DNA of 62,596 nt, the filler included, from Platydemus manokwari (taxonomy: Eukaryota): NCBI GenBank assembly GCA_037951405.1. It is 5 parts of 5 records of this genome, joined end to end, with 100 filler letters (N's around TTAATTAATTAA, not from the genome) between each part and the next. Parts side by side here need not be neighbours in the genome. Positions count along the whole stretch, not along the records: positions 40,058 to 49,897 come from JBBMOY011198099.1; 4 more parts are not named here. One strand, given 5' to 3'. Below are positions 43,422 through 48,516 of this stretch, piece after piece (the stretch's first letter is position 1; every line of letters begins with the position of its first letter). Made by a program: the position numbers and the translations under genes. Under the pieces are notes generated by a model, which was not told where the DNA came from, did not search any database, and was given only the letters and a program-made list of their open reading frames with translations.

Positions 43422-44375
43422 TCAAGCACATACATATCCGACATTATCTATTTCATCGGAACATTGTTCTGAGCAACAGTATTCACAACTCACTGTAAAT
43501 TTATTTTCAGCGATGCCTAAAAAAAGAAAATAATTTGAATTTTTCTAAATAAATGATAACATTGAGAAGCCGCTACTCCTTGAGATTCAAGACCAATTGA
43601 AAAAAGTAGTAGCCAAAATATGACAATTTCCTGAAATTACAATTGTAATTACAATGATAATTTTGTGAGAAATTATTATTACACACAATATTTTCGACAA
43701 CCAATCAGCATCATTCATTCTATTTTTGTTAAACATAATAACATTGATTATTTAACTCGATACACATACACATCTCCAACGATAATTATCAAAATTTTAT
43801 TGTATTATATTTATATAAGTTTTGTTTATTGAGCTTAAATCACGTAGTTTGAATTACTTTGATCTTCGAAATATCATTATGAGCACATATTATTCATTGA
43901 TATTATTGATTTACTAATTAATTGACTTATGATGAATAATTTTAATAGTGCACATTTTATACTAAGACCTAAAAATAGTTTATAGAGTTGCACTATCAAT
44001 ATAAATATCATTGAAATTGAGGGTATAAATATTGACGATTCCAATAATCAGCACACCAATTTATCAAGTCATCAGTATTTGATAACACCATTAATATACC
44101 ATTTATAATTCGATCATTGAAATATTAAAACACAAGATCATTTAATTGACTAACCAATCCATATTCCCACTTTAAATACTCGATAAAAGTTATTACATTG
44201 ATAACATGACTTTTTATTTCAAAAATTTAATTTATTCATAAGATTTTATAATATTTAATTTCAAATAAAAATTTCGTGAAATCAAAATCGCAACAATAAT
44301 TATCAGAATAATAAATTAATTAATAATTTCATTTCGAAACTCTACACATCAACTGGTATATTTGTAACTAACCAT
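43422..44375 (-). CDS. secreted six-cysteine knottin/conotoxin-like peptide precursor, copy 1 (55 aa)
   Basis: Exons 44373-44375 (ATG|gttagt), 43561-43630 and 43422-43516; introns 742 and 44 nt, GT-AG, phases 0 and 1. Product MEIVIFWLLLFSIGLESQGVAA-SQCIAENKFTVSCEYCCSEQCSDEIDNVGYVCA*. The same exon sizes occur in the paralog. Confidence 0.8.
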
Positions 44376-44999
44376 TTTTGTAAAATAGGCACCAAATATT
44401 TTTTCTTGACAAAGTCACTTCAGAAAATAATAATGATCATACATAATTTCGATTCGAATAAATTCCATTTTCACTTCTCATACGAGTTTAAAAAAATCAT
44501 TATCGTTGTGTCGATTAAGAATTTACATTAGTTCGAATTAATGATTTCATTTTTAAATAAATAGTCTCCGTTACAGAAACAAAGTTGTATCTGTTATGGT
44601 GGACATGGATTATTTCGTTGTGATATAAAATATTTGAATAACTATATATCAGAGTAAAATTTTAATGTTTAAACTGGCTATTTTTAGGTGAAATACAAAA
44701 ATTTATTAAGTTATCTGATTTGCTAACATTAAAATCGGAATCTTTTTGCATAATCTATTATTTATTTTTGCATTTAGCGTGTTCAACTAATTCCACTTCA
44801 AAAATATCTTCGAATAATGTTATCAATGAGACAACTGTTTAACAATCTCCGTCCAAATTTACATATCTACAAGAAAGTATCAACGGATCCGATTATTGAA
44901 TAAATTCACAAAACCAGATTATTAAATATTATTTTAATATTTCGAAAATATTAAGCAAGAATTCCAAAAATGTCTAAATAGATTGATATTGATGAGTTC

Positions 45000-47050
45000 T
45001 TATTAACTAACACCCTTGATCTAGATAATATCATCAATTTCCTATTGATCCAAGTGATTAGGATCAAGTGAAGAAATTCTAAATCAGGAGAAACTTCTGA
45101 ATAATGTACGAATACTTGATTCGGAGACACATTAATAATCAAGAAATTCATACTAAATATATAATTTTCAAAACTGGGATTCAATATTTGGTTGAATCAG
45201 TGTTGATTGTGGGACTAAGGAAGAAAATGAAATTATATAACATAAGAGTCGAATCCTCTAGTTTGAATGACGTCATAATAATGAAATTCGAAAAAAATAT
45301 TTTTAAAATAAGATCTACGGCGATTATTTGGAAAAAAAAATAGAAGAAATTATTCTACAGATTCTCAATTGGTTCAAAGATATAGTTAATTACCATTAAA
45401 GGTCAGATGATCATTTAGAATCACATAATGAAGAAAGTAGATATATAATTGCAACTCTAGATAAAACTCATCACTCAGACTCAAAGGTATAGAACCAGAG
45501 GTAATCATTCGAGAACCGCAGATTATAAGTATGAAAGATTTTCATATTCAATGAACTACATCACTGAAAGATTATACAATCAATGTGTGTCAATTATGAA
45601 AGAAGATTGCAAATAAGAGTTACGACTTTAAGTTGTCAAAACGATCAGATTGTCTGAAGAATAAAATGAATAAATAGATTATTGAAATTATAAGTAGAAT
45701 TTAGAAAAATTATTGCATGAGTAAATATAATATGAAATCGTTATCAATAACAGAATTTCTTTCACACAACAAGATCTTTAAATTGTGAAGATTGACATGA
45801 GATATGAAATAAATTTACTATATTGAAATTTAATCTGCGGGCTAATGGTAAGAATAGGAAGGAGAATTAAAATAAAATTTTAAATTACTTAAAAGTATTT
45901 CAAAAATCAATTTCAATGAGTCGCCTTATAAAGAAGTTTGGACTTGCTTGTAATTCCGCAAGATATGCAGTATTGCAAAAATTTTATTTCCAAATCTCCA
46001 CTATGAAACACTGTAAATATTCAAGAGCAAGTGAAGTGTAATTTTTATGTTAACTTTGAACGTGTGAAAAGATTAATGTCACTGAAATCAAATTAAATAT
46101 CAATAACTAATATGGTAGAAAAGTTTATTTTCAAGATTTTCAGAATATAATAAATAAAACATTGCCAGACAACAGAGAGAAAAGGGAAGCGGAATTATCA
46201 ATGACGAGAGAAAAAGTAAATCTTACGATTAATAGAATCGATGAATTATTAAATAGCTAGACAAAAATAAAGTAAAATACTGGAAAAATCAATTTGGAAA
46301 TCCTAGGACTCATTTTGAAGAATAGAGAAATATTAAGAAATAAAACGGCCAAGTTTTTAACTAAACATAATGCCCTAGTGACAATCCCAGTTGGTGAAAA
46401 TTGTGTATTTGCTACGGATTAGAAAAATGATGCACAGCTCCCGATGCGAAGATATTTCTGTAAAACTCATGATCGCATGCTCAAACAAAATTTCAGTTAA
46501 ATGTAGAAGGAAAGCTGGGCTTGATGACAACATATCACAAGAATTATATCGCACAAATGTACGAAGCCTAACATACTACATTGTATTTAAATGTTCGCTA
46601 CGTTTCATAAATTTTCATTAGATCAATCGATCTTTCTTCCAGTAATGAGAATTCTAAAGGCACCGGAATCTGTAACAATCAACAAAATAACAATATTTTT
46701 TTCAATTTCACACCCATTAATTATTTAGAATAAACAGGCATGCACTGATCAGAAGATCCTGTAGAAGCGACGCGTAATCTCTTATTGTCATGAGAATGAC
46801 AAACGGTTTTGAAGCAACTTATTTATACAGTTATGCCAAATTAAAGAGGAAGATAAAATATAGATTTTTTATTGTATGCGATCCGCAGAATGATGGAGTA
46901 TTGCGTAGGATTGGTCTTCATAATAAACAGAGTTTTGAGTTGGCTTACCTTCTTATTATTGCTGCGGTGAAAGAATCTCATAGGCTATACCGAACACACA
47001 GAGCTAAGGAGTTTAAATTTAAATAACGCAATGACATAGCTCACTAGGCG
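45000..47050 (+). mobile_element. decayed Penelope-like retroelement between the knottin genes
   Basis: Fragments KGSGII (DKG..VIM-like, about 46180) and YGL.K...AQLPMR (YGLPK.HK...PLRP-like, about 46410-46450). Boundaries are approximate. Confidence 0.5.
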
Positions 47051-47510
47051 CAAGTTTACGTCTTCGACATGAATTTTTTATTCCGTGTTTTATTTTATAT
47101 AGGTTTAAATCTGTTAAGATCATGCTAAGAACTTCAAATGAATTTTTTCAGGACAGCGACTCTACAACGTTCCTAAAAATTCAACAGATAATTTACCATA
47201 CTTCAAAGATGAGGCTTCTATAGGGAATAAAGACATGCCAAACTCTGGAATTTTTTAGTTACTCAACTCTAGGAACTGATGATTTAATTTTCTTAGAGTG
47301 TAGATCTAATTTCTCTCCAAATTTGTGATATACAAGACATGTCTTTTCTCACATCTAGTTCATTTTATTTCGACCTAAACAAATGGAATATAATCATATC
47401 ACCTTAAATAATTGCATCAAATTCTCAAAAGATTCTTTTAACATTTATTTGATAGCGAGTCATTTACATGAACAATGTCTCGGAAATATAATTTTCGAAA
47501 GCTATCCATG

Positions 47511-47965
47511 TCACGCACACAAAAATCCGATATACAATAAGCTACCACTACATTCATTGGAGCAACAGTTATCACAACTAAAGGCAACATTATATTTTCC
47601 CGTGCCTACAGAATAGAAAATAATTACAAGTTTTCTGAATAAATAATAACATTTAGAAGCTGTTGATCTTTGAGATTGGTGACCAATTGAAAAAAGAAGT
47701 AGCCATAATATAACAATTTTCTGAAATTAGAATTGCTATCGTAATGATATCATTACTAGAAATTATTTTTACAGACATACTATTTTCGTGAACCATTCCG
47801 TTATCATTCATTGTATTTTCTTTCAATGTAATATGATTGATTATTTAACTTGATACACATTCACATATCTTCAACAATAATTATCAGAATATTAATTTAA
47901 TTAATAATTCCATTCAGAACCTTTACACATCAGTTGCCATATTTATTAATATATAAACAAACCAA
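47511..47965 (-). CDS. secreted six-cysteine knottin/conotoxin-like peptide precursor, copy 2 (start exon uncertain)
   Basis: Exons 47651-47720 (70 nt) and 47511-47605 (95 nt) with a 45-nt intron give KIVILWLLLFSIGHQSQRSTA-SKCTGKYNVAFSCDNCCSNECSGSLLYIGFLCA*. The cognate first exon has TTG instead of ATG (47963-47965); an intact ATG|gttagt lies at 48514-48516. Confidence 0.72.
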
Positions 47966-48035
47966 TTTTCTAAAATAGGCACCAAATATTTTCTATTCAC
48001 AAAGTCACTTCAGAAAATAATAATGATCATAATGA

Positions 48036-48516
48036 CTAAAATATGATAATTTCCTGAAATTGGATTTGTAATTACAAAGATAACTTTGTGTGCAATTATT
48101 ATGAGACACAATATTTTCGATAACCAATCAGCATCATTTATTATATTTTCGTTATATATAGATTTTTTTACTCGATACACATTCAGTAAACAAGCAAGCA
48201 ATCAAAACAACATCAAATTAACAAAGCACTAAAACCTAACAGATCAACCACCAATAATCAAACAAATATCATCGTATTTGGAAGTTTGTTCCTAATTTAA
48301 ATAACTCAGCTGTTTTACGAATGTCAGTTATTTTCTAAATTATTCTATTTTGTGATATTAATTTTGATATTTTCGAATTTTTGAAAACATTGGTATTATG
48401 AGTTTAAATCACGTGGTTTGAATTACTTTAATTATCAGAATATTAACTTAATTAAAAATTCCATTCAGAACCTCTACACATCAATTGGCATATTTATTAA
48501 TATATAAACTAACCAT
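48036..48516 (-). pseudogene. truncated knottin paralog, copy 3
   Basis: ATG exon 48514-48516, an intron similar to that of copy 1, an acceptor and exon start at 48053 reading EIIIF* (TGG>TAG), then fusion to the 5' flank of copy 2. Confidence 0.7.

Follow-up and report, generated by a model that had tools for sequence, protein, structure and literature searches.

The minus strand of a 62,596-nucleotide window of the genome of Platydemus manokwari (GenBank assembly GCA_037951405.1; the window is the whole stretch of DNA, in which five parts are joined end to end with filler letters between them) seems to carry a small family of orphan genes that would encode secreted peptides with six cysteines, and in which the exon for the mature peptide diverges fast. 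We put the probability of this reading at about 55%. The analysis was confined to positions 40058-49897, the part of the window from JBBMOY011198099.1, which contains no N, has a G+C content of 27% and shows weak CpG depletion (observed/expected 0.87); it has the look of eukaryotic DNA with short introns. Two paralogous gene models, here called gene A and gene B, lie in this piece together with the 5′ remnant of a third unit. The family would plausibly belong to a familiar sort, that of fast-evolving toxin- or defence-like secreted peptides.

The split three-exon models proposed in an earlier sequence-only reading of this DNA were reproduced exactly from the minus strand, with the exons joined by a local script. 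The start codon stands alone in exon 1 of both models, exon 2 continues a predicted signal peptide, and exon 3 encodes the cysteine-rich part. The coding sequences of A and of B are each 168 nt long and in frame, giving 55 residues and a stop (the exon-wise translations agree), and the position of the stop codon is identical in the two. GT..AG borders are found in all four introns, and intron 2, in phase 1, interrupts the codon of the first Cys in A and B alike. As the same reading had said, A and B are missing from the mechanical list of open reading frames: neither exon 2 nor exon 3 contains a start codon, and a stop is located three codons upstream of the exon-2 acceptors. The spliced products were joined by the local script only, and were used for translation, for the ratio of nonsynonymous to synonymous divergence (dN/dS), for the isoelectric point (pI) and for one A-versus-B score.

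Retention of intron 2 in gene A shifts the frame and leads to a stop. This means that splicing is required to link the signal and cysteine-rich parts. This frame break, together with the difference in length of intron 2 between the paralogs (44 versus 45 nt), indicates that the segment behaves as an intron. The interior of intron 1 of gene A shows large insertions and deletions relative to unit B, as expected for non-coding DNA. It should be mentioned that intron 2 of gene B is open in frame, which results in a contiguous 71-codon open stretch (47726-47514). The first codon of this intron also reads Cys, and its retention would add 15 residues and not truncate the product.

The framework C-x9-C-x2-CC-x3-C-x10-C, which had been predicted for the mature peptides, was confirmed: the spacing of the cysteines is 9, 2, 0, 3 and 10 in the products of both A and B. 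The predicted mature peptides have 33 residues and masses of 3.5-3.6 kDa, with pI values of 4.05 (A) and 5.78 (B). The predicted N-terminus consists of one charged residue after the Met, 12-13 hydrophobic residues and a polar stretch. Small residues occupy the -3 and -1 positions of the likely cleavage point, followed by Ser-x-Cys, so that Cys1 is the third residue. A dibasic site and a propeptide are absent from both precursors. In the C-terminal loop, a Gly-aromatic pair before the last Cys is kept. The AlphaFold2 model of the exon-3 part only, without Cys1, had a mean confidence score (pLDDT) of 52, too low to be informative. The fold could be a cystine knot or a different one.

The comparison of A with B argues for genes and against chance frames. 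Twelve of the 33 mature residues are identical, namely all six Cys and six of the 27 others (hypergeometric p = 8e-4). With 35 mismatches over 92 sites (62% identity), the segment of exon 3 that codes for the mature peptide is the most diverged one of the unit. The identity is 81% in exon 2 and 84% in intron 2, and the pooled flanking non-coding DNA is 77.6% identical over 586 sites; the identity of exon 3 is lower than that of these flanks (Fisher p = 0.0017). In the sliding identity profile, the trough coincides exactly with the mature peptide. The dN and dS values of the mature part are 0.48 and 0.58, compared with a flanking non-coding distance of about 0.27 (derived by hand from the 77.6% identity). 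The mature exon thus outpaces its non-coding surroundings and keeps every Cys, which is the signature of externally acting peptides under diversifying evolution. The same pattern is that of a generic secreted cysteine-rich family: the mature part outpaces both the signal and the non-coding flanks, with the Cys residues fixed. Furthermore, the motif C..CC...C occurs at only two places across the six frames of the piece, one in A and one in B, and the core of the signal exon occurs twice, compared with none expected from shuffles.

The peptides had been described as a toxin, defence or antimicrobial family. The pattern of a secreted, diverging peptide, with a conserved signal exon and fixed Cys, agrees with this description; the antimicrobial part is weakened, since both peptides are acidic to neutral, and their lack of cationic character speaks against antimicrobial peptides of the classical membrane-active type. 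The sequence alone does not allow a ranking of the possible roles, among them prey capture, defence, control of microbes and signalling.

The following order of events might account for the structure of the genes. Transcription would start within the highly conserved block directly upstream of the ATG-only exon. Splicing would join the ATG to the 70-nt exon carrying the remainder of a signal peptide of about 22 residues, and would remove the intron of 44-45 nt from within the first Cys codon. The mature peptide of 33 residues would come from the last exon; no propeptide would precede it, it would end in Cys-Ala, and its six Cys would presumably pair in three disulfides. Secretion would follow once the signal is cleaved off. 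Gene B would borrow the promoter and the ATG exon of the upstream remnant.

This last step is related to the architecture of the locus. The two genes lie in duplicated units of about 1.75 kb, which are 67% identical across 1823 columns in self-BLAST (43027-44745 versus 47108-48882), with 2.36 kb of unique sequence between them. Identity within the unit peaks at the exon-1 block: the conserved upstream block of A, with the ATG and the donor, agrees with its counterpart upstream of 48516 at 108 of 115 positions (94%), compared with 74-82% elsewhere in the unit. Position -3 relative to the ATG is an A, and the 15 nt around the ATG of gene A recur at 48507-48521. Two short upstream ATGs, each with an early stop, were observed in the conserved upstream blocks (44376-44480 and 48517-48621, minus strand); they are either located 5′ of the transcription start or form short upstream reading frames. 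At the other end of the unit, about 100 nt from the AATAAA onward (43268-43366 versus 47352-47457, minus strand) are 87-92% identical, above the introns and the coding exons, and an RNA fold test of this block on both strands gave nothing significant.

A truncated third copy is present, as had been reported, with a 23-nt start of exon 2 (48053-48031) behind an intact acceptor. This truncated exon joins directly onto a second, degenerate exon-1 block, which belongs to gene B. The intron and exon-2 part of the remnant has 83% identity to unit A versus 71% to gene B; the remnant is nearer to unit A, and the locus is therefore read as three ancestral units, one of which has lost its 3′ half. The degenerate block has no start codon, its donor is altered, and the distal third of the upstream block is gone. 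Intron 1 of gene B (793 nt, GT..AG) holds the truncated exon 2 of the third unit as well as the degenerate block. The claim of two paralogs thus stands as far as paralogy is concerned, but the 5′ end of gene B is rearranged: with its own exon-1 block nonworking, gene B leans on exon 1 of the remnant. As modelled, its expression needs the promoter and ATG of the remnant and a bypass of the remnant acceptor. Exons 2 and 3 of gene B are intact, and gene A looks intact throughout. The coordinates of all of these features are collected in Table 1.

Table 1. Features of the peptide-gene locus, in positions of the window
Feature	Position	Strand	Remarks
Duplicated unit A	43027-44745	-	gene A and flanks; self-BLAST
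Gene A, conserved upstream block	44376-44480	-	putative promoter and 5′ untranslated region
Gene A, exon 1, coding part	44375-44373	-	ATG alone, then GT donor
Gene A, intron 1	43631-44372	-	742 nt, GT..AG
Gene A, exon 2	43630-43561	-	70 nt, predicted signal-peptide exon; last base is first base of Cys1 codon
Gene A, intron 2	43517-43560	-	44 nt, phase 1, GT..AG, T-rich tract
Gene A, exon 3	43516-43422	-	95 nt including TGA; predicted six-Cys mature peptide
Gene A, AATAAA	43353-43358	-	64 nt past stop; kept in unit B
Duplicated unit B	47108-48882	-	gene B and 5′ remnant of third unit; self-BLAST
Gene B, whole model	47511-48516	-	first base of ATG to last base of stop
Gene B, exon 1	48516-48514	-	ATG alone
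Gene B, exon 2	47720-47651	-	70 nt
Gene B, intron 2	47606-47650	-	45 nt, phase 1, GT..AG
Gene B, exon 3	47605-47511	-	95 nt including TGA; predicted six-Cys mature peptide
Gene B, AATAAA	47444-47449	-	62 nt past stop
Third unit, 5′ remnant	48031-48621	-	upstream block, ATG exon 48516-48514, intron, truncated exon 2
Degenerate exon-1 block of gene B	47878-48031	-	94% identical to 48429-48582

Several points weigh against a family of working peptide genes. Both genes are known from genomic sequence alone, which can hardly prove a first exon made of nothing but the ATG, and the N-terminus fits a signal peptide as judged only by rule of thumb. Within the mature exon, dN/dS does not exceed 1 (0.82, from only about 18 synonymous sites), so that what can be claimed is faster evolution than in the flanks, and not formal positive selection. 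Gene conversion, not constraint, could be behind the high identity of the flanks. Intron 1 of gene B contains the intact competing acceptor of the remnant, and its use leads to a stop after six codons. In addition, no true relative was found in any of the databases searched.

Part of these points would also be expected if the two copies were relics or never-expressed duplicates, that is, a segmentally copied gene or proto-gene segment that is now drifting and yields no peptide. The lack of a homologue in the databases searched fits this explanation, and so does the overall dN/dS between A and B, which at 0.79 is near neutral. The locus is rearranged, with its truncated unit, degenerate exon-1 block and large intron insertions and deletions, and it is set among decayed fragments of mobile elements. 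However, neutral divergence of 38% should not spare the six Cys codons in both copies (p = 8e-4), nor are these the only elements spared: both frames, the four splice-site pairs, the position of the stop and the AATAAA are kept as well. The excess divergence of the mature exon over the introns would also be left unexplained. Relics are thus considered unlikely.

A second alternative leaves the product unchanged and concerns the origin of its start codon. The spliced leaders of flatworms carry a 3′-terminal AUG that can act as the initiator, and over 40 Schistosoma cDNAs depend on it (PMC9851317). If a leader of this type donated the AUG here, exon 2 would be a trans-splice acceptor, and the upstream ATG-GT would be part of an outron or promoter. 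Exon 2 indeed begins in frame at codon 2 and has no ATG of its own, with the stop three codons upstream, and this arrangement would rescue gene B, the exon-1 block of which lacks a start codon. The weak CpG depletion fits lineages with little DNA methylation. On the other hand, two of the three copies have the ATG and its donor inside the best-conserved 115 nt, where the start context is good; the conservation peak at the exon-1 block is what the model with an ATG-only exon would account for. Scans of the piece with Rfam and for tRNA genes gave no match to a spliced-leader RNA or to any other RNA family. Donation of the start by a spliced leader therefore seems distinctly improbable, somewhat more so than decay of the copies.

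Chance open frames within a non-coding repeat or the interior of a transposon, with the conservation reflecting shared ancestry of repeat copies, are very improbable: the unit is repeated, a reverse-transcriptase fragment lies nearby and the 2.36-kb spacer resembles decayed coding DNA, but the unit contains no terminal inverted repeats, long terminal repeats or transposon protein, just two copies exist within about 10 kb, and both copies keep, in register and with matching splice sites, five Cys within 30 codons of DNA of 27% GC, unlike what a random repeat would yield.

The search for relatives used as database queries the separate exon-3 peptides or the 71-codon open stretch of gene B. Among 5.8 billion clustered proteins (word-indexed), no candidate was found for the 71-residue stretch of gene B or for exon 3 of gene A with its in-frame upstream extension. 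Neither the exon-3 peptides nor the 71-residue stretch matched a Pfam family at E values up to 5, and a PDB sequence search at E values up to 10 gave no relevant match. An exact DNA pattern and protein patterns had no match in the JGI metagenomes, and a full-text literature search with short peptide words and the accession of an ENA contig (see below) returned nothing. Exact look-ups of two open reading frames of the window also returned nothing. In a local test, the A-to-B distance corresponded to a score of about 36 bits with the 71-residue query, so that a relative this far away would be borderline for a library of 1.84 billion representatives. The missing relatives are weak evidence, because sequences of the source organism itself seem to be missing from these collections: its retroelement matches one ENA contig only.

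A HMMER search over the 1.84 billion representatives returned three long multi-repeat proteins of bacterial type (P0002, P0003, P0004), which were rejected as homologues. Their E values against the 71-residue query (2e-6 to 4e-4) arise purely from adding up 3-8 weak matches of single repeats to a stretch rich in Ser, Cys and Gly. These scores call for caution with short cysteine-rich queries.

The retroelement fragment is located at 40272-41576 on the plus strand and has a Pfam RVT_1 match. Over 1.3 kb, its identity to the ENA metagenome contig ERZ5540423 (L001 2953-4247) is 88%. Read in the frame of the long piece, the matched span has five in-frame stops, and the fragment matches only about half of the L001 reverse-transcriptase product. 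These stops and the half-length match mean that it is a decayed, truncated copy. On the minus strand, 41685-42787 contains a run of open stretches of 49-110 codons in differing frames, one of which is Cys/His-rich; it looks like decayed coding sequence. The idea that this region belongs to a polymerase-bearing mobile element found no support in Pfam or PDB sequence searches. The spacer between the units (44746-47107, 2.36 kb) is purine-rich on the plus strand, with positive AT and GC skew, and has many open stretches of 48-82 codons on that strand. Pfam gave no match in it. This spacer may be an old insertion that split the tandem array.

If A and B are expressed, they would be a further case of a mature-peptide exon that evolves faster than its own introns. 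They would also mean that whole families of short secreted peptides are easily missed by annotation, as a result of a lone-ATG exon and a tiny intron in the first Cys codon. The orphan six-cysteine scaffold, with its spacing beyond the usual knottin ranges, would join the catalogue of disulfide-rich peptides. A more far-reaching possibility, which we hold to be rather doubtful, is that the expressed peptides have a disulfide fold other than the canonical knot, given loops of 9 and 2 residues. They would then found a new structural family, made up of secreted interaction peptides that evolve fast, in an AT-rich lineage of invertebrates that has been poorly sampled, with the AUG coming from either the ATG-only exon or a spliced leader.

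When the predicted peptides are compared with known systems, they resemble the inhibitor cystine knot (ICK) peptides of spiders, scorpions, cone snails and other animals in several respects: they have six Cys in the order C-C-CC-C-C, are small (33 residues) and are predicted to be secreted. The ICK consensus is CX3-7CX3-8CX0-7CX1-4CX4-13C, with the connectivity C1-C4, C2-C5 and C3-C6 (PMC4942781); a slightly narrower consensus is given in PMC3210452. In the knot, the third disulfide passes through the ring. Loops 3 (0), 4 (3) and 5 (10) of A and B are within the former consensus, whereas loops 1 (9 residues) and 2 (2 residues) are out of range, in line with the unusual spacing pointed out by the sequence-only reading. 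Its assignment to knottins and conotoxins is thus retained for the order of the cysteines but not for family membership: two loops are off the consensus, and no sequence or profile match was found. The tick peptide ISTX-I, which has six Cys with a spacing off the ICK consensus, adopts a non-ICK fold (PMC4942781). It provides a precedent for unusual spacing, although no sequence relation to A or B was found, and it means that the framework of A and B does not by itself establish a knot.

The O-superfamily conotoxins (framework VI/VII) share with A and B the order of the cysteines, the contrast between a conserved signal and a hypervariable mature part with fixed Cys, and a mature peptide encoded by the last exon. 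A conotoxin precursor is laid out as a superfamily-specific signal, a propeptide and the mature toxin. A and B differ in having no propeptide, another loop spacing, acidic to neutral peptides, an AT-rich genome and introns of 44-45 nt. As regards the signal and propeptide of the O-superfamily, the 71-residue stretch had no Pfam match and no dibasic site was present.

A closer parallel seems to be found in the CRP-I family of Mytilus. Its members have the array C(X3-6)C(X1-7)CC(X3-4)C(X3-5)C, a propeptide, a KR/RR site and four exons (PMC10138031). The family is lineage-restricted and tandemly expanding, with a conserved signal, a diverse mature peptide and a short first exon that is hard to detect (PMC10138031). 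Loops 1 and 5 of A and B are too long for this array, the KR/RR site and the propeptide are absent, the exons number three, and exon 1 carries the ATG, unlike in the CRP-I layout. Nevertheless, in both systems the last exon carries the C-C-CC-C-C array, and the signal is conserved versus a diverged mature part; the restriction to a lineage, the tandem copies and the short, easily missed first exon are further shared traits. By analogy, Mytilus CRP-I would be the closest documented counterpart of the A/B family in evolutionary behaviour and gene layout.

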